DNA of 64,000 bases from Tubulanus polymorphus. Lineage: Eukaryota; Animalia; Nemertea. Made by a program: the position numbers and the translations under genes. Where the stretch lies: NCBI RefSeq assembly GCF_964204645.1, contig NC_134034.1, positions 5,802,914-5,866,913 on the forward strand, given 5' to 3'. Positions 2,136-54,679 of this stretch are shown in pieces (the first letter of the stretch is position 1; every line of letters starts with the position of its first letter). The notes beneath the pieces were generated by a model that was not told where the DNA came from, did no database searches, and was given only the letters and a program-made list of their open reading frames with translations.

Positions 2136-2869
2136 TTAGAAATAGGTGACACAGAAAGACACAATTTTCATAATTTGAGGGATTTCGTACCCTCAAAAAT
2201 GGATTTTGGAATTTGAGGGGTTTATGAGGGATTTGAGGGGCTGTAAGAACCCTGTCTGATGCAAAAATCGCGACGATATCAAGATAATAACAAGGCTAAC
2301 AACCCATTTTCTAGTGGAGACATAATACTACACTGAATTCCTGATTCATGACATTCTGAGTCTGAGACCAGGGCCAGACCTGATATTCTAATTTTAGGGG
2401 GCAGAGAAACCTGAAAAAGAGCAGTTCTATGGATTAGGCCTATTTTAAGGGGCGGATGATTTGATACGTGACGATTCATGCCAAGCAAGCCAAGAATATA
2501 TAGGCCAATAGGCCAACTTATTTTTCAGTGACCCTTTATCTAGAAGTGTCTGGTCAAATTTACTGAGAGCCCAAGGAAAAGGCAATGTGTTCATTAAAAT
2601 TTTATCATTTCTTTATGTTACCGATGTAAAAATGCCCATTTTATACTTTTTTAATGATGACAATGTAAATTTGCCTCTTTGGGCGACAAAATTTCACAAA
2701 TTGCTTTGTATAATTTTCTGAATGACATAGATAGAACATAGCCATGTGAGGTATCATCTTCACGGTTTAAATTGAGAATTTATTTCAAGGCATTTAAAAC
2801 AGATAAACATATGTAATACCTAACAGAATTAAAACACCAAGTCACCAAAATACAAGTCTCTAAGGATCT

Positions 2870-4700
2870 CCGAAACCATGAGTTTGTAGTCAACGGATAC
2901 CTCCACCTCTTCATTATCTGACCAATAGGCAATTGTGTATTCAATTTTACATCATTTCGTTTTTTTTGCACGATTTCACATATAAGATTTTCCCATGATA
3001 GACACACTCGTGGTAATCATCCTCAGTCCATGAATGATCAATATATTTATCTTTCAGTATAGCTGGATCATTGATGATAGAACGAATTTGTTCATCAGTA
3101 CCATCAAGTTCTCCTTCGGCTTCCTTAGAAACTAGGACCGCCTCGAATTGTCACGTAACATGGTTACATTCCTGTGTGTCTTTATTATGTTGCTTTGCCT
3201 TAATTCACAATTCTTTTTCGATAGTGATTTCATCCGATTGAAGTTTCCGGAGATTTCTTATATTACGTCCACGAGTGATGGCAAATCTGACTATTTTCTC
3301 CTGTATATTAGAGGCGGGATGACCTGAAGACACTGGAAAATTTCATCTACTGGCAATTCCTCACCGAAGATAATCGCTTTCGGCTGATAACGAGTCTAAA
3401 GGTTTCTCATTTAATGATTCCAAATTTTCAACGCAGCTTTTCGGATATGGCACCATCTCCAGGTTACTGAGGTTGTTTTGATTAGCATACAATTTTCGTA
3501 TCTATGGCCCAGTTATGACCTTTCCTAACAGTCCCAGCACCTGTAGATGAATAATTATGTGATCGCTCTTTAAATCCTCAATCAGTGTAGTTTTCAATGT
3601 CGTATTGTTGTTACAGGCTCACTTCAGGTAATGAAGTAATTTTTTGTGCAAGTAAAAGTATACACTACTTAAGTAAAATAATTACACACGTAACGGACAA
3701 TACCAAATGCTGCATTTTCACGTTTCATAAAATTTTTGAAACCAGGCGGGTCTCTTTTGCCGTCTTTAAACCTCATTTTGTTAAATGCTTTAATAACATT
3801 GACAACCTTACAACTACTACCGAATAGTTTTCCAATGAAATTATAACTTGTGTCAAAGTTCTTGAGAACTGTGATAGTTTTATGCGATAAACCATCCAAC
3901 GGATGATGATTACAATTCAGTTCTAGCCATTTCATCTCTAATTTTTCTTCGAGCTGAGTCACAACACAGTGGTTCACATTAAACCTATCAGATAGTTTTT
4001 AATATGACTTTTGAATGAGTTATAAGCATCAACAAATTCAGTCGTGAAATAATGCCTATGTCTCTGCAACTTCGTTTCAGAGAATCACTGATATGACTGA
4101 TATAATCCATTTGAGTGCCACCTCTTAATGTAGCAATCTGTAAAACATATCCAACCTGTCTATCATCTTCGTTTGAAACACAAATATGAACTTCATTAAT
4201 ATGTTCACCTTTCAGAGATGTGGCATCCCATGATGCCAAAGTTATGTTGTCATTATCAACTTGTAGTTCAGACATGATGCCCAATTCATATGCAAATTAA
4301 GAAAGAGTTGTTGGATATGCCTTGTTCAATTCAAGGGCAGTGAGTTCCTTGACGATGGGTTGCAATAGCCGACTAGTTGCCTCAACTGAAACTTGGTCAT
4401 TAAACAATGATATCCTGCTTTGCAATATGATACACTATAAGTTTTTTTTTTGTCCTTTTTCACATTAATTGAATTATCATCAGCACTCCTATCCATTTTA
4501 GCATCTTCAAATTGCAATGGTTAAGTCAGTAAACTCTGTTTGCAATGAAGCAAGCTGTGTCTTCAGCGCTGCATTATTCCATTCTAATTCAACTATATTT
4601 TTTTCTAACTCAGAAATATGTTTTTTGCTTCACACTTGTTTTTAGCAATTCCATTTTTGATTTCTTAATCTCTGCATAAAGACTATCAGCTTCCAGTTTA
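2870..4700 (-). pseudogene. Degraded DDE transposase-like gene (hAT/P/Kolobok-type CxxH clade, family unresolved)
   Basis: Successive frameshifted minus-strand pieces: WDATSLKGEHINEVH (3988-4284), ELNCNHHPLD...DPPGFKNF (3669-3977), LGLLGKVITGP* (~3505-3545). Many stops. Confidence 0.5.
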
Positions 4701-7700
4701 TTTCGCGAAGATTTAATCGTCCTTTTGCTTTATCTTTGAATCTCATACACAAATTTTTGATCTCGATTTCCTCTCTTCAGTCTTACTATTCAAAGCTTGA
4801 ATCAATTGAGCTTTGGTGGCAGCAAATGATGTAACCGACTTTAATTCTGAAAATTTTCTCCGGTAATTTCGGTTCGATTAACATATCTTTTTAACAGCTC
4901 CTCGGGGATGATAACAACTCGAACAATCAGCTCTTAACTTTTTCGGTGATGGCGAGTACACGAGTACATAGTTTCACAATCGCTTAGATGGTGTCGACGT
5001 AGACAATGGCGCGGAAATAAGTCCTGATGATTGGGAAAAATCTGCAGCTTGACCTTCTGATAACTGAGACCCAGAGAGATTTTCAGTCAATGATGACTGT
5101 TGAGATGTTGCAGATCTGGTTGCACTTAAATCCAAAGATTGACTGGAATGGACATGGGCAGTCTTCATCCAGAAACTTTGAAATAGAGTTCAAATTTCTG
5201 TTGATTTGTTTCTTTAAACTTTCAAGGTCCAGCACTTTTCGCCGTATATATACATAGAGCATCAAAATTACAATGGCAGAAATCCTGTGATAAATTCCTA
5301 ACTTCTTCACCAGGTGATTTGAATTGCTTTGCTGTCTTATTCAGGCTATGAAGATAGAACACTAGTCCAAGACGAACAGACATGTGGCTGAGTCAACCAG
5401 TTACAGGATCATAGTCATTCTTATACGACTCTATCAGATCACTTACTCGCTGTGCCATGATTATGAATTGTATAGTCCTAAAGAAAAACAAAATTGTATA
5501 AGCAAATAATATCAAAAATAAGAAAATTCAAATAAAAATGACATTCCACATTGTTTGTATTTTTTCAATATTCAGGTTCATGATCCAATGGGGAGATACT
5601 TGTAAAAAATGTCTCATGTGATATGAAGTCAAAAGAGGCCAAAGAACGAGGTATTAAAATTAAAGTGGACATGCTTGCGTCATAACAAAATTAACAAATA
5701 TGTTAAATATAATTTCAAATCCCCACTATTTTGACAGAAGAAAGCATGTAAACATTGTCATGTGTTTAGCCACGTGCTTATGATATTGTAGTGAACCAAT
5801 CAGGGTATCGCTTTGTGATCACGTGAACTAATTGTGCGCAAACGAGCCGGTTAGTAAACAATGTTCCAAGCGAAAAAAAACACGTATACTAAATGGAAAT
5901 ACATAAATGAGACATCAATTTGGCCGATAGATAACTACCCCTTAGTCCTATACCATTTTAAAGAATAAGAATGAATTCTTAAATCATTTTTCTTATCGAG
6001 AAATTTGATAGTCAAAGTTGACGAAATTTACGTGAAGAGCCGCCATATTGGCTTCCTCACTTGAGACCTTCATGATGGCGGCCTCCATGAAACTTGATTG
6101 AGTTCAAGGATGCACCCCAAAACGATGTTTTTAACTAAAAACAAGTCAAATTTTGTGTCTGGACTATTCTCAAAAGCGTCTTGGCATTCCTTTTATATGA
6201 AATAAAGACATGAAACTCACCTTTCTGCCGAAATTGCTGCCGATTTGTTATTTTTTGTCGTATCCAAAAAATTAAAATACCGCATGCAAAATTATAATTA
6301 CGCGCTTACAAAATCTCGTAGATTTACGTTGAAAAACGCAATTTCAGTGTGATTTTGAATTGTAAGTCTCCAGAGACTGTCAAAAAGTCTGCGATATTGT
6401 TGGGAATGATTTTTATTACCGCATCGCTCGATTGTAGCGACTGGTGCAAGTGCCTACAAAACAGTCCGCATTTTCAGCTGAATCAAGGCCTTTTCTAGTA
6501 GTTAGGGATTTCAAGTGAAAATTTTCCAAACACTATAGAAACAATTTAAAGGGCCTAAATGAAAGAAGGGTTTAATATAAGATCATAGCAATTTACAGAA
6601 ATAAAATCGGTTGCGCCGTTCAAAAGTTATGAAGGAATTTGTTGGCTGAAAATCACACTTCTCAGCCATAGAGTCTTCATTAGGAAATGAACTAAAGGTC
6701 ATAAGGTCAAATGGTGACCAAATGATCAATTTCTTAGTTAAGAAACAATTGAAAGTAGAAAAGAAACTTGTATATCTTTGGGAATTGTCATCCAATTTCA
6801 ATCAAACTATGGGAAAAATCAGAATAATAGTTTCCCTATTGATTATAAAACATAAACTAATAATTAATTAAGCCAATTAAGGGTAATTAGCTTAATTAAT
6901 TGGCTCATTGCCAGATCCAGGTATTCATCAGCTAAAAGCAGAGGATAAATGTTTACTTATTTGTGTTACAACTTTACAGGGATAAATATATGCGACCATA
7001 ATTTGTCGCAGACCTCGCAACACATAGAAATTGGTTGCCATGGTAACCACTATAGCAACAATTGATTCTTGGGATCAATATGGTTGCTGGCGCTCGGAAA
7101 GTATTTCAAACCCAAAAACGCATCATGATTGGTATCAAAATGACCGTATTTATCCCAGCTTCCTCTATTTAATCAGGATTCATGCATTCAGTTGATTGGT
7201 AAGAAAATATTAGAGATCGAATAAGAATTCTTGATTTTCAAATTTAGGCCAAGTTGTGTTAGGCCTATAGGATCTTCATAGCTGAAGAAGATCCAGAAGG
7301 AACCTTTATGGTATTTAAAGTACTCGAAGAAGGATTTATCAATTTACACTTTTATCTTTTGCAGGTGACTCCAAGAAATATGGTGAAGTTAAATAAGCCG
7401 AACCCATGTTGAAAAAATCATTATGCGAAATGTAGAATTGTAGGCAAATCCCTTAAAGCTTAGGCCTACCACTGGCTGAAGGGAGTAATTTAAACTGCAA
7501 CCTTCTTATCTGAATAAGCTTCAATAGATAAGTCAATGGATTTGTGGATTGAGAATTTGATTGCTTGTAATTAATCAAATACAGCAATTAGAAATTTTGT
7601 GGCCGCCCAAGTTCAAAGATGTTCATAAGAGTTTGGCCATTTCAATTGTAGCTTATAGTTGATTAGTAAAACATAAATAAATTATTATTTGATAAATAAA

Positions 7701-9523
7701 TATTGTATTTTCATTTCAGTTTAGTTTTTATATGGTCAGTTTTATTGGGGAGAGGCAGGGGGCTCATCTAGCTGCTTTTTCAGAATGATTGTTGAGCCGA
7801 GCGAGGTAGGCCTAAAAGGCCTTCAGAATAACACACGGGATTTCTTTAGCTTCATCGGTTACATCAACCCCAAAGTTGCTCAAAATAAAATTATTATCAT
7901 AAACTTCATTGATCCTGGGAGAAAATGACTTAAAACAACTTAAAACTAGCGTAAACAGCTGATTTACACATGTAAACAAACGCTAACGCGAACCCGGAAG
8001 TGAATGAAAATGCCCGGATGTAGCAATTTTTTCGATACTTTACAGCAACTTTACAGCAATTTCCGGGGAAGACGGCTTAACGAATCAAACTAAAACTGTT
8101 TGCTATATAAACTAAAACTACTATATTTTTACACCTGGGGGAGAACTAATTTCTAAATTTCATAATTTGATGAAATATATTGCATTTAAAACTTTATAGT
8201 GTCGCAAAATCGGTCAAATTGCCGGTACAAACAAGTACGGCATACCTGGATGTCAATCAAGAACTTTTGAAAACACCTGTGAAGGTTTCGTGATCCCCAG
8301 TCCCGCCCCTTTTTTGCGAGATCGCCTAGAGGTTGGGCATCTCAAAACTGCATTTTTCGAAATCCGCGGTGAAGAGTACACGCGCACCTGTCAATCAACA
8401 ATCTATAGTTGGCTGGAGTCCAACAGCTTGTAACTCGCGAACTACGCCGCGCATCAACATGGAATTTTCAACACAGTACAAGATGCTTATTATCTTCCCT
8501 CGAAAATTTAGTTCAAGTAAATCGGATGACAATTACTGAATTTATCAAGTTCATAACTTTTGAAGTGGGAAAAAACGGCACTATGGCCGGTTTTGATCAC
8601 GTGATCTGGAAACCCTATAGTAGTCATAGAATTAGATTTACGGCAGCGTCGTTTTTTTTATATGTGCCAATTTAATACCCCTGATATATGAACTACGTAT
8701 CTAAACACTTACATCAACATAAACAGTCAAATCGGTTCCATCTAGCAACATGACGCGACAAGTGATGCTATGTTTTGGCGGTCGATCCTCGACTATGCCT
8801 CTTTTGACACCACGACCTGTCCGGCGCCGACTCAGGAAACGTATCAAAGCAGCCATATTTTCTTTGTTGACTCAAAACTTTATAAGTTCCTTTTTTACGT
8901 TTACACAGCACACAGAGCAGAGGACGTGCCTTTTTGTTTGTGGATTTGTGGTCAGTCTTTTTTGTGTGTAGTAGGCCTAACACGTAAGTAAAAACAGGCG
9001 TTAATCCATCGCTACTGTTCATTTAAAAAAAACAACAACAAGAAAACCACCATAAAAGGGAGCTACAATAATTCCATGCTGTTGCTTCCAGCTTAGTTTT
9101 GGGAGATCTTGAGATTTTACCGACAAGAAGATAAAAACGAAAAATAAAGTTTCAGCCCAAATATCGCCAATACGCATGCGCCATTCAAATCAATTCAATT
9201 CAAAATTATATTTATTAATAAAATGCATTTTATTGTTCCATACAAAAACAGGAATTCATCGCAATATTGTAACGTCAAAAAACAAAGTGACCCACTATGT
9301 TGACAAATATATGCAAATTTACAGGAGTAAAAGAATCAATATTCTAGACTGGTTACCGGTCTCTATCTCCATATTGAATGGGACAGGCAACCAGTCTATC
9401 AATATACCGGTAACTCAAATCAACAAGGGTAGCTCCAATAATATCCAAACATTAGCAGTCAGCCATATCCGTGCTGGACTGGTCTCCACCTTCGGTTAAG
9501 CAACCGATTTTTGCGGGGTGTTA

Positions 9524-9727
9524 CTAAAACTATGCACTACTAAAACGAAGACCGAAGACCTATGCACTTTGCGAGACTAAAACTATGCATGACTAAAACG
9601 AAGACCGAAGACCTATGCACTTTGCGAGACTAAAACTATGCATGACTAAAACGAAGACCGAAGACCTGTGCACTTTGCGAGACTAAACCTATGCATGACT
9701 AAAACGAAGACCGAAGACCTATGCACT
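9524..9727 (+). repeat. 53-bp tandem repeat (~4 copies) at the left terminus; ~3 inverted copies at ~21007-21156
   Basis: Unit CTAAAACTATGCATGACTAAAACGAAGACCGAAGACCTATGCACTTTGCGAGA starts at 9524, 9577, 9630 and 9683. Confidence 0.9.
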
Positions 9728-9904
9728 CATTAGAAATCATAACTAGGGGCGCTATCTGTATATTCAACCACCTCTGTCGATGAGTATAGGCAATAGGGAC
9801 CTACTCGATATAAACATACATAAGGAAAAGTAAAATGTTCGTTTATTTTTCTCGGTTGCATAGGTCTTCGTTTTAGTAGTGCATAGCTTTAGTAACACCC
9901 ACAC

Positions 9905-11720
9905 ACACAAAACTAAAACTATGCATGACTAAAACGAAGACCTATGCACTTTGACAAAACTTACTTCAAACTGGAATTATTCACGCAACCACTTCGGGGA
10001 AGCTCCAGTTACGACTATGCCGACAAATGTACGTATTTACGACGAATGAAACGAAGTTTTCATCTATAAATGTGCGATTTCTATTATATTCGATTTGCTG
10101 CGTTGTCGTGGCTAATACATTATTTTCACAAATAATTGTTTACGATTCTATTCTTCTATCAATACTCTACACTCCGCTCGAGGCGGATCTCATCTTGAGA
10201 CCGTAATAATATTACCGACTCGAGTGATATCTGAGTTGGATGTCTCGTATTTTATAAAGTTGTCCAAAATTTTTCCAAAAACATCTTAGAATCGAACGGT
10301 TATCCGGGATGATCGGATCCTGATCGATCGAAGTCCACTGTTGTAGGAGTACGCGTTATTGTGACTGATAAATTACTCGCCATTAACCAAAATTGAACTG
10401 GGTGCATAGGTCTTCGTTTTAGTAGTGCATAGTTTTAGTAACACCCACACACACAAAACTAAAACTAAGCATGACTAAAACGAAGACCTATGCACTTTTA
10501 CAAAACTTACTTCAAACATGGAATTCTTCACGCAAGCACTTCGGGGAAGCTCCAGTTACGACTATGCCGACAAATGTACGTATTTACGACGAATAAAACA
10601 GAGTTTTCATCTATAAATGTGCGATTTCTATTATATCCGATTTGCTGGCTAATATATCATTTTCACAAATAAATGTTTAAAAGATTCTATTCTTCTATTA
10701 ATACTCTACACTCCGCTCGAGCCGGATCTCATCTCGTGACCGTAATGATATGACCGACTCGAGTGATATCCGAGTAGGATGTCATGTATTTTATAAAGCT
10801 GTCCAAAATTTTTCAAAAAACATCTTAGAATCGAACGGTTATCCGGGTTGATCGGATCCTGATCGATCGAAGTCCACTGTTGTAGGAGTACGCGTTATTG
10901 TGACTGATTAATTATTCGCCATTAACCAAAATTTAACTGGGTGCATAGGTCTTCGTTTTAGTAGTGCATAGTTTTAGTAACACCCACACACGCAAAACTA
11001 AAACTATGCATGACTAAAACGAAGACATATGCACTTTTACAAAACTTACTTAAAACATGGAACTCTTCGCGCAACCACTTCGGGGAAGCTCCAGTTACGA
11101 CTATGCCGACAAATGTACGTATTTACGACGAATAAAACGAAGTTTTCATCTATAAATGTGCGATTTCTATAATATAAGATTCGCTGCGTTGTTATGGCTA
11201 ATACATCATTTTCACAAATAAATGTTTAGGATTCTATTCTTCTATTAATACTCTACACTCCGTTCGGGCCGGATCTCATCTTGGGACCGCAATGATATGA
11301 CCGAATCGAGTGATATCAGTGTAGGATGTCATGTATTTTCTAAAGTTGTCCAAAATTTTTCAAAAAACATCTTAGAATCGAATGGTTATCCGGGTTGATC
11401 GGTTCCTGATCGATCGAAGTCCACTGTTGTAGGAGTACGCGTTATTGTGACTGATTAATTATTCGCCATTAACCAAAATTCAACTGGGTGCATAGGTCTT
11501 CGTTTTAGTAGTGCATAGATTTAGTAACACCCACACACGCAAAACTAAAAAACTATGCATGACTAAAACGAAGACCTATGACTTTTACAAAACTTACTTC
11601 AAACATGGAATTATTCACGCAACCACTTCGGGAAAGCTCCAGTTACGACTATGCCGACAAATGTACGCATTTACGACGAATAAAACGAATTTTTCATCTA
11701 TAAATGTGCGATTTCTATTA
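9905..11720 (+). repeat. ~540-bp tandem units (3 full + 1 partial) in the left arm
   Basis: GGGTGCATAGGTCTTCG recurs at 10400, 10939 and 11486. The same MHFYKTYFKHG-type chance ORFs recur in the units. Confidence 0.9.
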
Positions 11721-11938
11721 GGCCAAAAATGCATTTTTTCTCATGATTTTGAAATCCCGCCCGCATCGGAAAAATCATCGGGAAATTAGATGAAAATAAT
11801 GTCCATCCTCCCGCATCATAGCTCGAAGATAAATGTGTTTTTTTTATAAGAATTAAAATCCCCCCACCCGCATTGATATACTAACCATATCGTCATCTTT
11901 TTATCATTTTATTATTTCTCTATGAACGTATCGAGAAG
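11721..11938 (+). mobile_element. Truncated copy of the GGCCAAAAA MITE in the left arm
   Basis: Reverse complement of ~19220-19435, inserted at the same position of the 540-bp unit. Confidence 0.75.
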
Positions 11939-12428
11939 TTTCGTTTTAGTAGTGCATAGTTTTAGTCTAATCTCAACCTTGGGGAATTAGTTATGTAACC
12001 ATTTCAAAGACCTATGAAACCAATGGAGTGTCTAAGTTTTTCATTATGAATTACTGTTCGTTGGTTTCTACCGCGTTAAAAAAGGAGTGGTGTACGGGGA
12101 TTGTAGTAGAGGGTAAAGTGGTTGGTCCTGTCTAAAAGAATGTATGGCCCTTAAAAACGTTCCACTCTGACATCGCCCTCCAATTCATTTTGCGAAAATT
12201 GAAGCCAGTTTAAATATTGGGTGTCTGGAGTCAAGTTGTTTATTGCTGTACGTGACACTGGGTGTCCGTTTTCTGCTGTGTAGCACTTATGCACTCATCG
12301 ATTCACCTTAAAATTGTCACCACACCTTATTTTGGCGAATAAACTGACGTGGATCGTTAGTCAAGCCCACGCAATGGGAACTACAACTATGTACATTTGT
12401 ACGACTAAATTGAAGACATATGCACCAA

Positions 12429-12782
12429 ACGTGGCATCCTCGCTTGGCAGGTTTTAATTGCCGCCCGCCGGAAGTTCACGCCAACACATACCCTTGCCGC
12501 AAACCCTCTATTGTTCTTATTACATCGCCCACGATTTCTCGGGTGGAAAGGTTCCCGCTCAGCGCCTACCAGTCTATATTCTAGCCAATCAGATGCGTTT
12601 TTCCTGGCACAACGTTTGCTCTATAAATACCACGCATCTGATATGTATACTGAGTGGGAACCTGTCCGCACGAAAAATCGTGGGCGATGTAGTAGACCAG
12701 TAAAGGGTTTGCAGCAAAGGTTTGTGTTGGCGTGAGCTCCAGCGGGTGGCCATCAAACCTTGGCAAGTGAGGATGCAAACGT
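12429..12782. repeat. ~350-bp imperfect palindrome with CCAAT and TATA motifs in its centre
   Basis: Arms ~12429-12562 and ~12650-12782 (e.g. CACGCCAACACA / TGTGTTGGCGTG; TACATCGCCCACGATTT / AAATCGTGGGCGATGTA). CCAAT at 12585, TATAAATA at 12622. Confidence 0.75.
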
Positions 12783-13843
12783 GCACCAAACGCTGTCAAC
12801 AGCTGTGCGTTTGTCCAGAACGTGGAAGTTAAAAGACACCTAAAAAATTCAGTTGTCCAGTATGCCAGCCGAATCAGCGTATCGGAAAATGAGGCCAACC
12901 ACTCCTCCAAAGGGCATCAGCTCTTTGACAAAAAGATATAATGTCCTTAAAAACAAGCCTGACTATAAAAAATGAACTTCTCGCGTAATTTTATTTAAAG
13001 AAAAACAATACAGTTTGACGTGGGCTAATCCTGACTTTGACTATCAAAAAAAGTATTTACTCAGGTTTGCACAGATTATGGAGCACAACCGGCCTGGGCA
13101 GAGACTTTTTACCAAGGGACTATCCATTTATAACGTACGCAAAAACTTAGACCCACCTCCTTTCCTAGTACCTATTTGTATGTAAGTTTATGCGGCGCAC
13201 GTACTCCACCAACATTTCGCGGACCAACCCCCCTAGCCCACATCCACACGCTCATATGTTACACCCTGAGCAGAATTACATTTTAAAATACATTAAGGTG
13301 CATACAATACGCAACACTCTTTCACCCCCTCCCCTTTTGTTTACAATTGCATGCAATTTAATAAGATACCCTCCCACCCAACAACGCGTACATAATAAAT
13401 GTATACCCCACAACTAATCATACTTAAAATACCTTTAACTGAAATCCATAACTGGTTGATTTCTTTAATATCTTCGTGCTTATAATAATGCTAATAAAAA
13501 CCTTGCTATACCCTATACCCTTAGTGCCTACCATCAAATAGAATTATGGTTTCGCATATCTTAAAACGTATAATTATATGTTACAGATCATAAGATGCTT
13601 CACTTTTGTTATCAATCACATGCTATCAATGGATACTAATTATCATGGTTCTATAGTACATGTAATTGTTGTATACGAGGCTCTATAGTACCAACATAAA
13701 CAAACCACCGCGCAATCGGCATGAAACTTAAAATTCGAACCTGGTTCACTAGTGTAACACTAAAAAGATAGGATGGTTTAATACCTGGGAATGTAAATAT
13801 ATCGCTTCTCTTTTAATAAAGTCGATTTATGCCTGTAGCTTCA

Positions 13844-13952
13844 CGTCTTCCCTCGGCAGGGATTCGAACCTGATGGCATTGCTACACTCAGCCACGCACT
13901 TACCGTGGCAAACCTCGATGCCATCAGCTTCGAATCCTAGCCGGGGAGGATG
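13844..13952. mobile_element. Mini MITE with 9-bp TSD and B-box-bearing TIRs (short copy)
   Basis: TSD GTAGCTTCA at 13835-13843 and 13953-13961. Ends CGTCTTCCC / GGGAGGATG. Confidence 0.8.
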
Positions 13953-14929
13953 GTAGCTTCATTTATCGTCTTCATGAAATAATACCAATTGCAAAGATGC
14001 AATATCTGCAAAACAGTACAATTGTTTTTTTTTTCAACTAACACGACAATATTTTGCAGGAACATATCGATTTGTTTTTTCAATGAATAACGCTAAATGA
14101 AGTTGAATTGACTTGGGCTGAACAAAATACATATAAAATTACTGAAGAACACTGTGGTACCCAATGTACTACACAACAAGCTTGGCAAATCTACTACCCC
14201 AAGTTTTAAACCTTTCCCGGGTTAAAAAGAAGCATACGGTAAAAATGTCAATACTTAAATTCCCAGTTTTATTTCCCTAGTTATCAAAACTGGAATCTGT
14301 TCTAGCGGCAGCAGATTACGTAACAATCCTTGCATAGCATTACAATTCGACGACATAGTCACGGTGTATATCCCAGGGGCTAGTTTAAGGATTCTTGAAA
14401 ACGGAATTCCTAAATCAATTTAAACTGCACTGGGAATCAATATGAGAGTTTAACATTCGTGCAATTCTGACGCAGAGGCACTAACAAATAGCCACACAGC
14501 CAATTAACAATTCAAAACGCAAACATAAAAAGCAACAATTAACCAGCAAAATCAATTTTGCAATCGATTGTGATCACAATATCTAGGCCTATGCCTCAGT
14601 ACCAATTTAATATGGAAATACCAAGTTATTCTACTATTCAAAGCCCCTGTTTTTCTTTGAATACCACGTTTTTGAAGAAAATTAAGTAAATTCGCAGCGG
14701 CAATAATTAGAACCTGTCCAAAGTCGGTATTTGGCTGCAGCAATCAAAAGTTGCTTCCAACGTGCCTGCACAGGACAGCAGCCTTGAGTGGGATCCACCC
14801 AATATTTCCTATGCTGATGGGCTCTTGGATACAAATATATACGAAAGATCAAGATAATTGATCAAAAGGTCTTCTAAATTTTCCTTGGAAACTTGAAAAA
14901 TGTGTAATAAGTGCTGATTTTGGCAAACG

Positions 14930-15137
14930 AGAATGGCTGCCAGTCGGCCATCTTGAATCTGACAGGGCCAGTTTTTGGGCTGAAAATGCGTCTAGGGTAG
15001 ATACATTTGTAACCCAAACATTTAGACATTACATTGAAGCGTCTTCAAAACTTCCCAAAATAACTGGATTCCGTCTACGGACAGACGAAAAGTGAACGCA
15101 ATAGCCCGCTGGGGCTAAAGTCCCAAGTGGGCCAAAA
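14930..15137 (-). mobile_element. Helentron-associated (DINE-1/HINE-like) non-autonomous element end
   Basis: GACAGACG microsatellite remnant followed by the hairpin AGCCCGCTGGGGCTAAAGTCCCAAGTGGGC and an A-run. An inverted homologue lies at ~39638-39770. Confidence 0.55.
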
Positions 15138-15460
15138 GGCAGGCTAAGGTCAGTTTTTACTTAGAATCTGCCTTTTTGTTGACATCTCTTTTATATCTTG
15201 ATCAAGGGGAAACCCTACCCAACCCTAACTCCCTGGACCCTCTAGACCCTAACGAAACCCAAACCCTGAACCCAATAGGCCCAACGATCTTTATTATTAT
15301 GGAGCCATTGGCAAAACAGCGTTTACAAAAAAATGCCACATTGGCAAAATATCCACTTCCAAACATACACTCGAGGCCGCTTCAATTTCAAGCGGCCTTG
15401 AGTGTATGTTTGGAAGTGGATATTGAAGAAATAGTGGATATATTAAAACTTCACTTTCAA

Positions 15461-15650
15461 GCGGCCTCGGTAGCTAGGTGAGATTAGACGTGATGTTATT
15501 GCATCCACTGAGTGACAAGTGGGTTCGAGTCTTGCTGGCTGCTTATAGTGTGCGGGCAACACTTCAGAGGCCATCCCGTAGTGAGGTTAAATGAATAATC
15601 CGATAGTGTTAGTCTTCGACTGGGAAATCGAACAAAATCCAAGCGACGTA
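15461..15650 (+). mobile_element. Degenerate tRNA-derived SINE
   Basis: A-box-like GGTAGCTAGGTG (~15469) and B-box GGTTCGAGTC (~15522), followed by a body sequence. Confidence 0.45.
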
Positions 15651-17013
15651 TAAATTAGCAAAACTAACAAAGACCCACCAGACCCGAGGCCGAACCCCCT
15701 ATCTGGGTCATCGTGACTCACTCAATGGGCATGATGGATACTGTGGATAAGTTAGTGCCCTATTTTCACTGTGCTGTAGTCATTGAGTGTCCCTGGATCA
15801 GCGAGCGCCAGCTGGACACAGAGCCGGAAAAAACTAAAAACTGGACGGTCCGCGCGCGCACCATGGCAGGCCTTAGATTCGTGCCACAACTGAACACCCT
15901 CAAACCACGTGCCTCAAACTGAATCACACGAAAAATTGACCTAAGTAACATTTCCTGCTGATGTTGCTTGTGTGATCTTTCGACTATTGTTAGGCCTAGT
16001 AGGCAGCGACTGCTGTTTAGGGCCTTTAGAGCTGAAAAATTGAGTTCAAATTACGCTGGCGGAACGGGGAATCGGCTTGCGGCATATAAACAAAGACTGG
16101 TTTCCGCTTACATAATCCAATCAAATAAAGATTTATTCCTACTCACACACCACCCGAGGGCATTACACCATAACGACGTAGCAAAGTTAGCCTCTTTTAT
16201 TAATCTTTTATTAGGGACAGATTAAGGGATTTATTTTCGATTTCGTTTCACAATTCATGTGGTCCGAATGGGCCCTACAAATTCTCGTCTACTATGCTGT
16301 TCTGATATATTATATATTTGTCGAACTCATTACGAGGCGGTTGCTTCAGAGAAAATGGAAATTTAGCCTAGTTCACATTAACGAAATATCCATTATGGAA
16401 GGCCAAACGTAGAATTTACTATGGTGGCCACAAAGTGTCAGTCTGGACAGCAATAGCATACGTATTTGGTCCGGATATACGGAAAAGAATATATAACCGG
16501 TGACCTATGCATGGATTATCATGGAATGTTCCAAGGGTTATTGCGGCCACGCTCCATCACTGTTATAACCATCACGTCAGTACGGTATGCCCTACCGTAA
16601 TAAATCAAATACAAAATACTACCTGGTACTCGAAAATTGCTAAATGCATCTTTCACATACCCTGGAAAATATTCAACTGAAATAATTTGAAAGTTTCCTC
16701 AATTTATGTTGATTAACTGCTACTGCCTACCGGCAAATGTGCTATATGCCTGACGATGAGCCAAAATATCTTTCTAGAATACACGTTGAGTACAACTATA
16801 AAATTGGTCAGACAATTGAAGTAACATATTCCCCCAAAGCATGTTTAATCAAGTTATTTACAGTATTTTCACTCAACTATTTCGTTTACCGGTACGAATA
16901 CCCTAGAAATATTCGTTACGGTACGGTACTAACCGTTAATACGGGATTGAAGAAAGATCAAAGTTAAAAATCTCTACCGGTACCCGAATTAAAACAGTTA
17001 CAATAAGGCCTAA

Positions 17014-17487
17014 TTGTAGAACAACTGAAACTGATTTCGACTGACATTTTTCATTTTTTTTAGTAATCCCCAAGGTCCCGATTTTTCCAGTTCGTTTTCC
17101 TATCAAAATCTGTCTCAAAGTCGGATTCTAGAATTCGGAAATTCGGCTAAGTGGGCTAGAATATATGTCCCGAACGTTTCAAAGCAATGCATATTTTCCA
17201 TCTCGTAGTCATTCGGCTAACTTCGGTTCTTTTTAAGAAAATCGTTACTGGCGCGCGGCGTCTATGGTAGATTGATTTTTCTGTCGACGGACAGTTAAGC
17301 ACATGTTTACAATAGTTGTCGGCTATAAAATAGAGTATTGACCCCGTCAATCAGTTAGGTTTTATGGTCTTAATATGTAGCTGATTCGGATTTTTCTTGG
17401 AAAAAACCCAAATCCGACATACTCATAATCGGAATTTTTCGAATAACATTTTCCGTTGTCCCAACGAGTCCGACTACAGTTCTACTG
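17014..17487 (+). mobile_element. Tc1/mariner MITE, copy 2 (same family as 647-1125), nested in the Foldback loop
   Basis: Shares CCTATCAAAATCTGTC..AAAGTCGGATTCTAGA, CATGTTTACAATAG and the ...AGTTCTACTG|TA end. Confidence 0.8.
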
Positions 17488-18834
17488 TATATATACGTCT
17501 AATCGTATAAGTTTCATTTCATACTTTCTTGGCCAACAAAACCGACAGATTTGGCCCTACCCCATGCACTTCTTCCTGGGTTAGAAAGTCCGACACATTG
17601 GGGGGGGGGGGGGCAGGGGGCTTCATCAGAAGCAGCAATGTGATACGTTAACAGGAGAGCTATTCGCTGGTATGAAACATGATATAAAGGGATTTTTATC
17701 CCAATGCCCTCCTATTGGTATATCGGCACAAACCAGATGGCGCTACAATACACTCAGTTACTGTTGGAGGCCCGTGTTTTCGGTTTCCCGCTGTTGACCG
17801 TTATCGTGAAATGAATCATTCCCAGATGATGGTCTTTCGTCGGTCCGGGGGTTCGGATTTTCACAGTGCGTTGCGGCGTTTTTGATGTTGTGAGTCGTTG
17901 TGATTGACATTTCCTGTAAGTGTATGGTTAGTTTATGAAATATTTCGGGTGGTTACTACCACCCTTCTTCAGTCTAAAATGACTTGCCAAATACAAACAC
18001 AGTATTAATACATGAAATATGAAATAAGACACGAATCGCTGCACATTACGTTATGGGGACTAGAGCACTGACATAACTTAGAAGAAGTGTATTATGGGGG
18101 CTGAAACCATTATTGAGGTTGACAGAACGATCGGAATGAGTAGTAATCAAAGCAGATTCAACTATATGTCGTTTAGTGCGACTACTGTTGGGAAAAATAA
18201 ATTGGCTCCAGAAAAATGAGAAAAGTTGACTCGAATTTAATTGAAATGTACTGAAGAAATTGAAGCATGGTAATTGAGTAACTACTAGCGGTTAGAGGTA
18301 TGTTCTTTAGACAGACCCGTGAATCTGGCGGATCCTCGCATACCATACTTGAAATTCTTGATTGCCACAGTAGCGTGGCCGGGTACCCATCTTAGCTACG
18401 ATTACGAAACTTGACTGCCAATTCAGAAGCACTGACCGTGACCAATTTAGAAATTACTGTTTGGCAATTTGGCAAGGCCTAGTAGTTGAAGTAGTTGAAG
18501 ATTATGTTCTGATGCAATGGTAACTTTGCTAAGGCAAAAAATAGTATCTTCACGATAAATCAATAAGAGCTATGTTTTCGATCGTTCAAGTGGCAAACGT
18601 AAAAACACCTCATTGATGTTATGTTTAAATTATTTGATGTGTGTCGCTCCTATAGCCATGTACGGGTATGAGATATGAGGATATGAAAATCTCGATTTAT
18701 TAGAAAATACTCATTGTTTCTTCTGTGCATTTTAATGTGACAAAATATTCTCGCATATTTATTGGTAAAAATAAAGTATTAGCCACGACAACGTATTATG
18801 ATGTCAGATTATGTACAATATAAATCGAATATAT

Positions 18835-19435
18835 GGCCAAAAAGATGCCCTGTTTCTCATCACATTGTTTTTTACCATGACGAGGGCGGGCGGTTTTCAT
18901 TTTTCTGAACTTTTTTTAAAAAAAGTAGAAATAAAAATTGTTTGAATTTTTTTTGGAGATGCGGGAGGTGTCTATTCTATTTCTATTACAACAATGAAAA
19001 TATCCCTCAGTGATTTCTCTACAGATGCGGCAGATAGTTTTTTTATTTTTGGCACCACATTTGCACGAACAATAAAAGAGAAAACGCTTCGAAATGATAA
19101 TCACGCCAGAAATCAAACGCAGAAATAGCTCCACGGCGACCTTGGCATTTGACATAGGCCTACGGTAACCGACCCCGTTGGAGTCATCAAAGGTGCCGAT
19201 GATATTTATACGATCAACTTTTCTCGATACGTTCATAGAGAAATGAAATGATAAAAAGATGACGATATGGTTAGTATATCAATGCGGGTAGGGGGATTTT
19301 AATTCTTATTAAAAAAAACACATTTATCTTCGAGCTATGATGCGGGAGGATAGACATTATTTTCATCTAATTTTCCGATGATTTTTCCGATGCGGGCGGG
19401 ATTTCAAAATCATGAGAAGAAATGCATTTTTGGCC
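18835..19435. mobile_element. Harbinger-like MITE (GGCCAAAAA TIRs) inserted in a 540-bp unit of the right arm
   Basis: Ends GGCCAAAAAG / ATTTTTGGCC. Unit sequence resumes on both sides (18760-18834 and 19436 onward). Probable TTA target, with one mismatch. Confidence 0.7.
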
Positions 19436-19829
19436 TAATAGAAATCGCACATTTATAGATGAAAACTTCGTTTCATTCGTCGTAAATGCGTACATTTGTC
19501 GGCATAGTCGTAACTGGAGCTTCCCCGAAGTGGTTGCGTGAAGAATTCCATGTTTGAAGTAAGTTTTGTAAAAGTGCATTGGTCTTCGTTTTAGTCATGC
19601 ATAGTTTTTGTTTTGCGTGTGTGGGTGTTACTAAAACTATGCACTACTAAAACGAAGACCTATGCACCCAGTTAAATTTTGGTTAATGGCGAATAATTAA
19701 TCAGTCACAATAACGCGTACTCCTAAATATGTCTGGTTTCGTCGCTATAGTATACTATTTATTAAAAACAATTACATCAATATCATTTATGTAGACCTAT
19801 CATTCTTAAAGCTCAGGTTTTTAGCGTAA

Positions 19830-20080
19830 GAGGTTTGGACGAATATTCATCCCAAAGTCAATATTTCGAATTATCAGACCTAGGTCATTTTCCTTCGTTT
19901 GACAGTCGGAGGAATATTCCTCCCGAAGTCGATACTTTGAATATCAGAACTGAAGGTCAAATTCTCTTCGTTTGACCTTGGGAGGAATATTCCTCCCAAA
20001 GTCAATTGTTTGAATATCAGACCCCTTGGTCAAGTTTCCATCGATTGACTTTGGGAGGAATATTCCTCCCGCAGTCAATT
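19830..20080. repeat. 71-73-bp tandem array, each unit with a ~34-bp palindrome
   Basis: Consensus TTGACTTTGGGAGGAATATTCCTCCCAAAGTCAA. GAATATTC centres at 19841, 19912, 19985 and 20058. Confidence 0.85.
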
Positions 20081-21905
20081 TTCACAATAGCGGTCCTCTT
20101 AATTGGTGATGATCAATGATCGTGCGGCTCATATTTCTATTGTGTGCCTATCCGGTGTAACGCGCGACACGCTTACATAATCTTATCTGTAAATGTGAAG
20201 ACCTCGGGGGCATTATGTTCTCTAAAGCCCGACATTATCCCACATTCGGGACTGTGAATGGGTTGATTTTACGGATGAGTCGACATGTTTCAACAATTTT
20301 TAACTGTTCATTTTTGAATATTTGAAGACTAATGAACTAAAAATTACTTAAATTTTTGATACATTTTGAGAAAGTCACAAAACATTTGAGACTGCGTTAA
20401 CAGTGGACTTCGATCGATCAGGATCCGATCAACCCGGATAACCGTTCGATTCTAGGATGTTTTTTGAAAAATGTTGGACAACTTTATAAAATACATGACA
20501 TCCTACTCGGATATCAATCGAGTCGGTCATATCATAACGGTCTCAAGATGAGATCCGGCTCGAGCGGAGTGTAGAATATTAATACAAGAAAAGAATCCTA
20601 AACATTTATTTGTGAAAATGATGTATTAGCCAGCAAATCGAATATAATAGAAATCGCACATTTATAGAGAAAAACTTCGTTTCATTCGTCGTAAATACGT
20701 ACATTTGTCGGCATAGTCGTAACTGGAGCTTCCCCGATGTGGTTGCGTGAATAATTCCATGTTTGAAGTAAGTTTTGTAAAAGTGCATAGGTCTTCGTTT
20801 TAGTCATGCATAGTTTTAGTTTTGCGTGCGTGGGTGTTACTAAAACCATGCACTACTAAAACGAAGACCTATGCACCCGAGAAAAATTACCGAACATTTT
20901 ACGTTTCCTTATGTATGTTTATATCGAGAAGGTCCCTATTGCCTATACTCATCGACAGAGGTGGTTGAATATATAGATAGCGCCCCTAGTTATGATTTCT
21001 AATGAGTGCATAGGTCTTCGGTCTTCGTTTTAGTCATGCATAGGTTTAGTCTCGCAAAGTGCATAGGTCTTCGGTCTTCGTTTTAGTCATGCATAGTTTT
21101 AGTCTCGCAAAGTGCATAGGTCTTCGGTCTTCGTTTTAGTAGTGCATAGTTTTAGTAACACCCGATTTTTGCGATCCATTTCTGTTAAATTTTTGTTATA
21201 TGTTTCCTGAACGATTTGCGTCGATTTTGCGATCAAATCGAATGTTCGTTAAAAGACGATTTAGACTCATCACATGACACAAACATAGCGACGCGGAAGA
21301 GAAAGGCGGCCCTCATAACTTTACTTGAAGATGGATTCTCGCCGTCTTGTGCCGGTACGCCCCCCCCCCCCGTGGCCACGGTCACAAAATAGCCTTTCCC
21401 TTTCCGTTATAATTGGATTTCGCGGGGGACAAACAACTCCTGCGCAGGAGTGGGTTCCTGCGTCCTCCTGCGATGGATTTACCGTAGATTCACTTATAAC
21501 GTATTATTTCCCAGGTCCCGATTTTTTCCTTCTACTCGGCCTCAGAGGGGAACCCCCTATCTCTTTGTGGCTCTTCACCGTTGGTCCGTTCGACTTCCTC
21601 GTGGAGATGTAACGGATTCCGTGGGCACGTACTGTAACCAGAATATCTTCTCCGTAATATTTGGATTTCGCGGGGGACAAGCAACTCCTGCAGCTGTGCT
21701 TGTCCCGCACCGGCCACCCATCTTAGGTCTCCATACGGCCTGGATCCCTTCCGGGGCGCCCCATATCTCTTCGTGCCTCTAAACCGTTGGTGGGTACGTA
21801 CGTCTGGGTCCGCTCGTCCTCCTTTTGGAGGCGAGTAATTCAGCTGGAACCCTCTGACGGATAAATTGCCGGTAGCGTGACTCCAGCCTCTCCTCAGCTA
21901 ATACC

Positions 21906-51201: not shown

Positions 51202-52960
51202 CCCTTTGAGACCCGGATTAATTATTACACATGCTATCCCAGTCCCAGAAATTTATGGTAATTGCAAGGCGAAAACGTCCTATATTCAAATGCTTGTAGC
51301 TTCCAGCCTATTAGAGATACAGCTTTGCACAGTTCTTTATAAGCTTTCTAATGATACCAAATTTGTCATATTTTGACAAATTTTTTTTGGGGTAAATTAT
51401 GGAAAATTCATGAAAAACGTACAAATTCTGACGAAAATTGTCTTTTTTGTCTCAAAATCATTAGCTGTTCAAGAAATAAAGCATAAAAGTACATTAGAGA
51501 CTGAAATAAACATGATTTGTCTCACCTTACTGATTATTCATGTGATTCTGCCTCCAATACAGCTTATAATCCACAAAACGATGATAAATCTCAAAGCATG
51601 GAACGTCACACAAAGGTACAGGTACACATGTTTTACACTGCCTTTGTGTCTGATGCCGGCGAACATACTTTTTGTTCCTTCTAAGTGTGCACACAACACA
51701 ATCAGGCCTGCCATTAGTTTTTTCCATAAAATGTGCTCCTCCATTCAAACGCTGTGGTGCATCGTTATGCCGAATCTGACGACCAGGTTGATGAGGTGCA
51801 CGTTGGTAGTCAGCAATAAGTTCATGGCATAACTTCAAACGAAACTGTCTACTGGTCAATGCATCAGCAGCATTGGACACCTTGTGCATTATGTATGCAT
51901 TTGTTACTGCTGTGATAAGCAGGTGACAAAAAACCTTTTTCCACCATTTCACTGAACGATGTAGTATGCTGAAATAGGAGTTGTATTGATCATTCAAATC
52001 CGACATGTCCGACGCGTTATGCCATAACATCAAAGGCGACATGTCCTGCAATTGTCGTTTGTTGGTGCGGGCCGTGAATTGCTTCAGTTTTAGTGGATTT
52101 CCTGCGCGATTCGCCCTAACTGTACCACAGGCACCAATGTTTCGATCTTTTAGGTCCACAAATAGTTTCACACTAGTGAAGAAATTGTCACCTGTTATGA
52201 ATGCCAGCCCGAACATTCTGCGATGCGTCCATAACAACTCGATACCCAAGGTCAACTTGACCACCGTCCGCTCCTTTGTACAGCGTCCAATTGTGGGCGT
52301 AACCAGTTTTGGACCCAGCCAGTAACCATGCTTTCATGCCCCACTTGACAGGCTTACTCTTGATGTATTGCAACATAGAAGTTTGACCCTTGAAGGCTAT
52401 CATGCCTTCATCCACGGACAGAAACTTTTCCATATGGAAGGCGTCATTCCATGCGCGAACTAGCTGTTCAATCAAAGACTTGACCTTGAATGTCCTGTCA
52501 TAACCAGGCTGTCCTCTTTGAATTTGTGTTTCGTTATTCACAGGGTGCAAGAATCGTAATAGCATCAAAACCCGATTGCGGCTCATTACGGCTCGGAATC
52601 CTGGTTTATCAGTCAGATGATCAGTAGACCAATGTGCACGAAAAGATCCCCGATCTTCATATCCCGTCAGTAACAACAATGCCAGGAATGCTTTCATTTC
52701 GTCACTAGTGACATTATACCAGGTTTCTAGAACACTATCTGTAGTATTTCCACTGTTTTGATATTGTTGAAAATAATGATTTGTTTCAGTCACTAGCATG
52801 TCTATAATAGTGTCCGGAAAAGCTTTTGTGAAAAAGTCAATTGGCGTGTAGTCCTTTGTATCGAACTTGGGCTCACCTGGATTCGGACAGTTGTACTGCG
52901 GCAACCAGTAAGGAGGGGGGTGGTTTCCAAGTTTTGTCAAGGTCAGATTATAATTGTTGG
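51202..52960 (-). mobile_element. piggyBac copy 2: one end intact; transposase frameshifted, internally deleted and 5'-truncated
   Basis: TTAA|CCCTTTGAG at 51198-51210. SVDEGM, KPVKWG, GDNFFTS, KWWKK and the Cys-rich C-terminus are present. The YN..MGGVD segment is missing. Confidence 0.9.
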
Positions 52961-54679
52961 TCAAGTAGTGATTTAAAGATTTTACAAGCGCCACCGCACA
53001 ACGCCGCCTAGAGAGCAAGTTGAGAAAACGGCTCTGTAACTTATTAGCCCTTGGCCCGTATCAGCTTCATAACAAGTTTGGACAAGATTAAAAACTAGAA
53101 CTGTAGCACTAATAGCAAATTCAAGCCAAAGTTGACGTACAGACGGATGGACCCTAAGACATGACAGTATCACTCTAACCCATCAGCTCAGCTGACCTTT
53201 GGTCACAGCGGAGCTTAAAATTACATGTACCATAGAAATGGATTTCTCTCAATGAATTAATTTAATTGAATATCAGTGTATTAGTATTGACTTATTCTCA
53301 GTTGGATCAAGACCTAATTCACAGTCCGAACATTCAGGCTCAGTTAAATTAGATGAGCTAGAATCAGGAATATTTCGTTTTATTTCTGACTGCCCACTGA
53401 CGATTTGAAAAACACCACCGGTTCTTTTAGTTTCTCTCTTACAACTTTAATAGGCATTATTTTTCCAGATTTTATGATGGTAACCTCGGGATAATCCGTA
53501 TGCAATTCCTTAGTAGTTCTTTTGTGAGGCTTGATGGATAAACTGAAAAATGAAATAGGCTGGTAAAGGTTAGAAGTAATCAGATCACATGGAGCGTTTC
53601 TGGTCTTTCAGTCCATAGTACACTAAAGCACCACTTGATGACCTCAACGCGGGGCCAGGATTAGCGCCTATTTTCATCCCCTATTATGAGATGTGGTCCA
53701 CCAGCGGAACTAGGGGCTCAGGGACAGCATGACCACTTGTCACAAAATTCAATGCCCCCTGTTGACCATATGCAGTCCACCCCCGATATACCGCCCTCCC
53801 ATCGATGAGTATCGAAGAAGGGTTACCATAATATAGTATACTATAACACGGGGCGATAGACGATCGAATGAAGGTTTACCCTTTGATAAAGTATCGGAGA
53901 AGGGGATGTGTATTGGGTGGATTATCGCCCGCCTTCTAGGCTTACCTGTCAATATTGGAAATTTTACTCCCAATTCAATGCAATCACATCCCATCCCTGC
54001 TTCAACTGCCTGGAATACACAAAACTCAGGAAATTGACTAGTCTTGGGCCAATTTATCATAGTTATAAGCTTTAAAACACAAGAAAATGGGCCTAGGTGA
54101 TTGATGGTAAGTGGTACTGATACAAACCCACATGCCACATCAATATATACCGTAGAACTCAATTTGATTTGAGTTCTTTGTATAGACCAAGTTTAAGAAT
54201 TTGAAGTTGAAACATTTTCGAGTATCAGAACCCTTAAGTAACTAAACAAATTCAGTCCTATTTTTACGATTATTGGGTCTAGCTGCACCACATATAGACC
54301 CTTAACGGCCCCAAGAGTAATTATTTACTTACTTTCACAAATGATATCCTTTAAATCGACTGAAATGGCTTGAAAAGAAACCAAATCATGATAACTTGCG
54401 ATGTTTTTAACTGTCGCATCTAGCGAGGATGACTCCACATTCAGGTGAAGGTCACAATCGCGTGCGATAGATTGGTTCGCGCACACCGAATAATATCGAT
54501 TTCTTTAAAGGTCACGACAAGTGAGCGCAGCTTCAAGATCTCTTATTCTTAGTATTGTCTGTACGCACGTGTTATATGTACTTAGATAAGAGTTTGTCGT
54601 GGGGGGAGGAACCTGTACCTGGATTAGATTTAACAGTATTGGGATTATCTATGATAATAGCTGATTCTATAATATAACC

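Follow-up and report, generated by a model that had tools for sequence, protein, structure and literature searches.

The window analysed here, a 64,000-nucleotide stretch of the ribbon worm Tubulanus polymorphus (contig NC_134034.1; C10:5802914-5866913 in a 268-Mb assembly of 77 contigs that reaches chromosome scale), contains an 11.6-kb non-coding element of the foldback type. The element is real and entered its site as one piece, with the 10-bp target-site duplication (TSD) of a staggered cut. We read it as a non-autonomous, cut-and-paste, foldback-type DNA transposon that is most likely served by a Mutator-like element (MULE) or Foldback (FB) transposase encoded elsewhere in the genome, and give this reading a probability of roughly 0.7.

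The element occupies positions 9516-21163 of the window (11,648 bp), and both ends were read directly. It opens with GGGTGTTACTAAAACTATGCAC and closes with the reverse complement of GGGTGTTACTAAAACTATGCAC. Outside these ends lies a direct repeat, GATTTTTGCG, that is exactly 10 bp long: the bases next to either copy differ, with ...GCAACC preceding the left copy and ATCCATT... following the right one. The chance of an exact 10/10 match at two fixed places is about 1e-6. The flanks beside the insertion are single-copy in the genome, and hence there is no paralogous empty site. The original prediction had put a 10-bp TSD around 11,648 bp, had seen in the whole, cargo included, one foldback-like insertion, and had held that a separate TSD for each arm, together with the lack of an empty allele, would speak against it. 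The exact TSD at 9506-9515 and 21164-21173 and the precise ends bear it out, and neither arm has a duplication of its own.

The anatomy of the arms was determined with a repeat search, with Tandem Repeats Finder and with BLAST comparisons of defined modules. The left inverted arm is 2,398 bp (9516-11913) and the right 1,922 bp (19242-21163), and both follow a common plan in which a terminal domain A, MITE-like (miniature inverted-repeat transposable element), is followed by 546-bp units B and then by an inner domain. The parts are as follows.

9506-9515, no strand: left TSD, GATTTTTGCG, identical to 21164-21173
9516-9900, + strand: left terminal domain A, MITE-like, where the true terminus is accompanied by the 53-bp repeat, by a unique part and by an inverted end
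9901-10446, 10447-10985 and 10986-11532, + strand: three tandem units B of 546, 539 and 547 bp
11533-11913, + strand: left inner domain, 97.4% identical to 19242-19622
19242-19622, - strand: right inner domain, the mirror of 11533-11913
19623-20831, - strand: single full unit B of the right arm, in two pieces (20399-20831 and 19623-19725) split by an insert
20832-21163, - strand: right terminal domain A, with the 53-bp repeat present 2.9 times at 21005-21156
21164-21173, no strand: right TSD, GATTTTTGCG, read directly

In the left domain A the 53-bp repeat is present 3.9 times (9523-9727) and the inverted terminal-type end lies at 9854-9900. In each unit B the linker ACACACRCAAAA is followed by an internal-type motif, then by sequence specific to the unit and finally by a complete inverted terminus. 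The left inner domain joins the first 186 nt of a unit (11533-11720) to about 200 bp of arm-specific sequence that runs up to 11913, and the right inner region is likewise made up of a partial unit (19436-19622) and the inner domain proper (19242-19435). Identity between the arms is 94-98.7% overall, with 98.7% in the outer 159 bp, 95.4% in the rest of domain A, 94-95.5% in the units and 97.4% in the inner domain. The insert that splits the right-arm unit (19726-20398, 673 bp) is private to that arm; it contains a 73-bp tandem repeat, present 3.4 times and each with the palindrome GGGAGGAATATTCCTCCC, and a clear target duplication is not visible around it. These measurements agree with the predicted inverted arms of about 2-2.4 kb, with a terminal module of 53-bp repeats followed by units of about 540 bp in each arm, and with the predicted asymmetry in copy number, which is 3.9 vs 2.9 for the 53-bp repeat and 3 vs 1 for full units. 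The coordinate 10445 of the prediction was off by one and should be 10446.

At the six junctions between modules, ...GTAACACCC is followed by the linker ACACACRCAAAA and then by CTAAAACTATGCATGAC...; barring single-base variants, the fuller reading is ...GTGCATAGGTCTTCGTTTTAGTAGTGCATAGTTTTAGTAACACCC / ACACACRCAAAA / CTAAAACTATGCATGACTAAAACGAAGACC...TATGCAC. The linker at the outer junction of the right arm reads ACGCACGCAAAA, and the head at the 10447 junction (10459-10471) reads CTAAGC, with one mismatch. The unit tails are complete termini that match the true end at 22/22 or 21/22 positions, and they carry the variant that is confined to the outermost copy of the 53-bp repeat (CACTAC together with GGGTGTTA). 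The unit heads carry the variant of the inner copies (CATGAC, TATGCATGAC) and are always without the terminal 8 nt. Because of this internal variant and the constant lack of the first 8 nt, the heads are to be read as internal subterminal repeats rather than clipped ends, and the 546-bp units as not self-contained.

The arms had been predicted to be chains of self-contained mini-transposons, with a complete end, a linker and a clipped start at each junction. Complete, outward-facing termini are indeed present at every internal junction; the clipped starts are the internal repeat variant described above. If each 546-bp unit had been an independent mini-transposon landing beside the previous one, the complete terminus at every tail and the inverted motifs that bound the units would be explained. 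However, independent insertions would leave junctions that differ, and the 12-nt linker is alike at all six junctions save for one or two A/G differences. On C1, C3, C5, C6 and C8, too, it is conserved where it follows domain A or a unit. In addition, the heads lack the terminal 8 nt and have the internal repeat variant, and neither a solo unit nor a derivative of domain A plus a unit was found flanked by a duplication among the 71 ends in the genome. An origin by chained insertions is thus highly improbable, and the conserved linker points to arrays that grew by tandem duplication of linker plus unit from one ancestral junction.

Since each unit tail is a full terminus, every junction is palindromic. 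The palindrome measures 37 bp and has an 18-nt loop, and the junctions fold as single-stranded DNA hairpins with energies of -26 to -34 kcal/mol (z = -8.5 to -12). These palindromes are plausible drivers of slippage or unequal exchange. The arms also contain a bipartite motif of about 45 nt, CTAAAACTATGCAyk-ACTAAAACGAAGACC...TATGCAC, the halves of which are CTAAAACTATGCA and ACTAAAACGAAGACC. The left arm has 12 copies of it and the right arm seven, in both orientations, and the rest of the 64 kb has none. In the genome the motif is specific to the family, and its 14-mer occurs 133 times vs twice for a reversed control. By analogy with Galileo and Tetris (PMC4079207), the motifs are putative transposase-binding sites, and their multiplication, together with the full terminus in each unit tail, may have been tolerated or favoured as a source of added binding sites.

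The element belongs to a family with few copies. The 22-nt terminus, searched with at most two mismatches, occurs 71 times in the genome, and its reversed control does not occur. The same arm plan is found at C1:15183601-15187705, where domain A, five units, a partial unit and the inner domain are followed by the internal sequence that follows the left arm in the window, and C5:13723069-13725786 is a truncated version of it. Domain A is also found on its own, as MITE-like copies of 195-423 bp, at about 8-10 loci. One solo copy (L014, 255 bp) is flanked by the 10-bp duplication AAGCAATAAC, another (L012, 225 bp) by a duplication matching at 9/10, and a small foldback of domain A sequence (L011, 423 bp) by a 9-bp duplication. 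The four informative insertions, counting that of the window, thus have duplications of 9-10 bp, and the genome search with the terminal letters that had been proposed yielded the 71 ends and these TSDs. A size ladder of released derivatives had been predicted as well. There is evidence for its first rung only, as domain A occurs free with 9-10-bp TSDs; the rung of domain A plus a unit, flanked by a duplication, is missing from the 71 ends, and solo domain A could just as well be what the compound arm arose from.

Units from the window, from C1 and from C5 are 92-97% alike without any clustering by locus, those of the window being as close to the chromosome-1 units as to one another. This implies an array that is older than the spread or divergence of the copies. 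The exception is one pair of units within the C1 copy that is 99.1% alike, which means that the array is still turning over. Comparison of the copies shows that unit number changes by tandem duplication or loss. No satellite has formed, as the units B are confined to copies of the family and the longest run is 5.3 units.

Between the arms lies a loop of 7.3 kb. It contains no open reading frame (ORF) longer than 120 codons, twenty of its longest frames have no Pfam match and a comparison with Rfam likewise gave nothing, in keeping with the predicted loop of about 7 kb in which no transposase was visible. Its parts are given below.

11914-13767, + strand: family-specific internal sequence, the start of which (about 11936-11965) is an inverted end motif in degenerate form
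13768-16175, no strand: segment without another family copy, which contains an abundant unrelated repeat (14769-15137)
16176-17329, + strand: internal sequence that is joined to arms of the family elsewhere too, at C6 and at two duplicated loci on C8 (three loci)
17934-18217, no strand: nested young 284-bp repeat unrelated to the element family, with at least 30 genomic copies at 94-97%
18214-18755, - strand: sequence that also borders an old unit array at C10:6.95 Mb, oriented as the inner side of the right arm would be

The segment 11914-13767 matches C5:13723950-13725786 at 95% and C1 at 96% over 734 bp. Because this segment, 16176-17329 and 18214-18755 recur beside arms or arrays of the family, we infer that the loop is largely the degenerate interior of the family itself, with later nested insertions. 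The unrelated nested pieces are 14769-15137, 17934-18217 and, in the right arm, the 673-bp insert, and about 2 kb has no counterpart elsewhere.

The loop and the arms bear on a further possibility, namely that two nearby family members in opposite orientation, with host DNA between them, came to use their outer ends together as a macrotransposon. In the loop, 13768-16175 (about 2.4 kb) and further stretches have no counterpart in other family copies, and the arms are no more alike than are copies at different loci. However, sequence specific to the family lies inside both arms (11914-13767 as at C1 and C5, 16176-17329 as at C6 and C8, 18214-18755 as at C10:6.95 Mb). Both arms finish in the same inner domain and neither is bounded by its own duplication. 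A macrotransposon is accordingly quite unlikely.

Two of the nested repeats are known from elsewhere in the genome. The repeat at 14769-15137, also seen at 14555-14650, is about 370 bp long and has at least 40 copies at 85-88% (4,812 first-look candidates); elsewhere it is found together with tandem repeats of about 90-150 bp. The 284-bp repeat at 17934-18217 is probably a young MITE of another family.

The assignment to a superfamily was made by comparing the element with the features of known groups. As in FB-like elements, the inverted arms are long and composite, with tandem repeats that differ between arms and copies (three units, one unit and, at C1, five), the TSD falls within 8-10 bp, usually 9, and there are MITE-like relatives with the same arm tips. 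MULEs are characterized by 8-11-bp duplications and unusually long arms (PMC6446971), and the element has duplications of 9-10 bp and arms of 1.9-2.4 kb. P or Galileo elements are a poorer match, as the duplications are 9-10 bp and not 7-8 bp and the loop contains no protein domain, and the element contains no polymerase-B sequence such as a Maverick/Polinton would have, these elements being marked by a protein-primed polymerase B and an integrase between AG...CT ends and by a 6-bp duplication. The predicted MULE/Foldback type therefore fits in duplication length and arm anatomy, and on these two features membership of the Mutator superfamily is likely rather than proven.

At least 56 matches to the MULE domain PF10551 were found in the genome, some of them in ORFs of about 800 amino acids (aa), and none in the window. 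A partner was sought by comparing the positions of the 22-nt terminus (at most two mismatches), a 15-nt terminus (at most one mismatch) and the exact 14-nt half-site with those of all PF10551 matches. The ORFs near lone ends contained only Harbinger, hAT-like, polymerase-B or retroelement domains. A copy encoding a MULE or P/Galileo transposase, for which a search had been suggested, was not found tied to the termini listed.

The family might instead belong to a transposase superfamily other than MULE. No MULE gene is linked to these ends among the matches listed, and according to the authors who described Tetris, foldback structure can arise independently (PMC4079207). Nevertheless, the observed duplications of 10, 10, 9-10 and 9 bp do not suit the superfamilies that would come into question, namely P (7-8 bp), hAT (8 bp), KDZ/Zisupton (8 bp), piggyBac (4 bp) and Polinton (6 bp; PMC4079207, PMC6446971 and established classification), and the polymerase-B elements nearby carry an AG... 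terminus of their own and inserted separately. We consider a non-MULE affiliation unlikely.

Protein-primed polymerase-B ORFs adjoin an arm at three family loci (L034, L037 and L043), the copies concerned lying on C1, C4 and C5, and the idea that the family is the end of a Maverick-like element was examined and rejected. The polymerase family is abundant, and its own 5' end, AGTAATTGG... (the AG... end), lies inside the terminal domain of the element family, at L043:8831. The polymerase-B copies joined to the family at C5 and C1 are 5'-truncated. To judge from these boundaries, the polymerase-B stretches are Maverick/Polinton-like insertions into or beside family copies and not genes of the family. 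The Maverick/Polinton-like sequences lie at L043:3400-8831 (G000:C4:10299800-10305230), L037:7225-10000, L034:8043-10000 and L045:6662-8553. They belong to a young family that is present in very large numbers (first-look candidates: 2,250 and 1,124), with polymerase-B matches 93-96% identical and open frames of up to about 1,690 aa; the polymerase ORF has a weak Pfam intein match (E = 0.0037). Transposases of the piggyBac type (DDE_Tnp_1_7 and zf-Tnp_2) were found in the window outside the element. One, at 58209-59744 (- strand), is a 511-aa frame that covers the whole Pfam model, and the other, at 51527-53018 (- strand), is split over two frames.

A number of observations weigh against a mobile element served by a MULE/FB transposase. 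None of the genomic PF10551 matches lies within 10 kb of the terminus or motif matches listed. The element in the window is the sole structurally complete, two-armed copy, and three solo copies of domain A, two of which (L004 and L005) are duplicates of each other and the third of which is L009, have no duplication. The binding of transposase to the motifs and the selective value of the arrays rest on inference. Finally, the short Logan contigs from three runs of one study, placed on 3,601 letters, bridged no junction under a 31-nt rule and revealed no empty allele; one 234-nt contig spans 9441-9535, with just 20 nt of it within the element.

The last of these points also bears on whether the structure could be an error of assembly, or a local inverted duplication that arose by recombination instead of transposition. 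Long inverted repeats are hard to assemble, and the Logan contigs span no junction. However, the arms diverge by 1-6% and are unequal in whole repeat units, only one of them has the 673-bp insert, and they are separated by 7.3 kb of non-palindromic loop in a window that contains no N and comes from an assembly with chromosome-scale contigs. Moreover, the exact 10-bp direct repeat abuts precise termini of the family. Given the arm differences, the private insert, the non-palindromic loop and the repeat at precise ends, an artefact or recombination product is so improbable as to be nearly negligible, and insertion of a foldback-type element by transposition is retained.

The closest known systems are Tetris and Tm1, and the element belongs, as a tidy example, to a kind already known rather than to a new one. 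The FB elements of Drosophila melanogaster have short arm repeats of 10-31 bp. Long arms, duplications of 8-11 bp, repeat arms thought to bind transposase and possible large interiors are shared with FB and Mutator-like elements, but the repeats here are of 53 and 546 bp, and FB/Mutator membership is not demonstrable without an enzyme. Tetris of Drosophila virilis has an outer domain shared with the MITE DAIBAM, 8-10-bp duplications, three complete copies, and tandem repeats of about 220 bp that have 37 bp in common with the outer domain; an autonomous partner for it was not found (PMC4079207). Like Tetris, the element is non-autonomous and made up of an outer domain, variable tandem repeats, an inner domain and a variable non-coding middle, with duplications in the 8-10-bp range, few structurally complete copies and arm tips shared with a MITE. 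It differs from Tetris in the length of the unit (546 bp vs about 220 bp), in having a full inverted terminus as the unit tail and 37-bp palindromes as junctions, in the absence of satellite-scale arrays (5.3 units at most) and in its host, and there is no sequence relationship between the two.

Tm1, a Mutator/Foldback element of root-knot nematodes, has composite arms that are about 93% alike with unequal numbers of repeats, 8-10-bp duplications without a target consensus and MITE-like members (PMC3169594). The composite, multi-domain arms with tandem repeats differing in number and the MITE-like members are found here too. In contrast, the repeats of Tm1 are about 14 bp and some Tm1 members encode a MULE-like transposase, whereas none was found here. 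Galileo, of the P superfamily, is similar in its long, variable arms with internal tandem repeats that supply extra transposase-binding sites (PMC4079207; PMC4168063), but has 7-8-bp duplications, vs 9-10 bp here, and a THAP-type transposase. Head-to-tail MITE-derived units with inverted motifs are known from Xstir and other MITE-array composites (PMC12628747) and from hAT-derived MITEs of cod (10.1101/2025.01.09.631634), in which stem-loop junctions have been proposed to drive expansion (PMC12628747; 10.1101/2025.01.09.631634). Those arrays are free-standing or derived from hAT or Tc1 elements, while here the array lies inside both arms of a larger element. What is particular to this element is the long unit with a full terminus as its tail and the palindromic junctions that result.

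Further features were noted at other loci of the family. In about a dozen copies (L017-L030; for example G000:C3:256241-259495), a non-coding repeat at least 2.6 kb long contains, at the same position, an old relative of domain A (74-83%). These older copies were rejected as independent insertions, as they have identical flanks inside the larger repeat, and the relative is probably an ancient insertion amplified along with its host repeat. On chromosome 1, the left flank, domain A and the first 423 nt of a unit are duplicated (L034:1-3738 vs 2739-6476; G000:C1:15179863-15186338). The second copy, which is located 2,738 bp upstream, has ATGAAAACTCCG as its flank too, and this is a local tandem segmental duplication that includes an element end. 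Another copy of domain A is broken up by an insert of about 4.5 kb (L031:1078-5566; G000:C3:15938423-15942911). A 24-nt minisatellite, translated as MINCLTVE repeats, forms two inverted arrays in this insert, which also contains a 216-aa ORF without a Pfam match in two inverted copies and looks like another foldback-like element. The larger copies of the family, on C1 to C6 (at 15.18, 16.9-17.1, 15.9, 15.7, 13.7 and 14.4 Mb), lie mostly in mid-contig regions dense in mobile elements. These may be pericentromeric heterochromatin, as reported for Tetris.

The complete termini within the arms raise the question of alternative end use. Correctly oriented internal 'right ends' are found 385, 931, 1,470 and 2,017 bp from the true left end, which could in principle pair with any of these unit tails, just as the internal termini could pair with the true opposite end. 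If the internal termini were live alternative ends, nested short elements of these lengths would be released, a proposal that we regard as doubtful. Were it true, pairing between the outward-facing internal ends of the two arms would amount to reversed-ends transposition, with local inversions, deletions and duplications as the outcome, and the compound arm would be an adaptation that increases the number of binding sites and of usable ends alike.

Foldback-type elements are sources of satellite DNA, hairpin RNAs and chromosomal rearrangements. The element described here is a clean, TSD-bracketed case in which a MITE-like end appears to have been built into kilobase-long arms by tandem duplication, with the terminus kept at each junction. 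The low copy number and well-resolved architecture of the family make it a good test substrate, with which the effect of extra subterminal sites and internal ends on transposition, and the role of palindromic junctions as a driver of array growth, could be tested. It overturns nothing known, and would add a foldback-type family to the ribbon worms, a phylum in which mobile elements have been little described.

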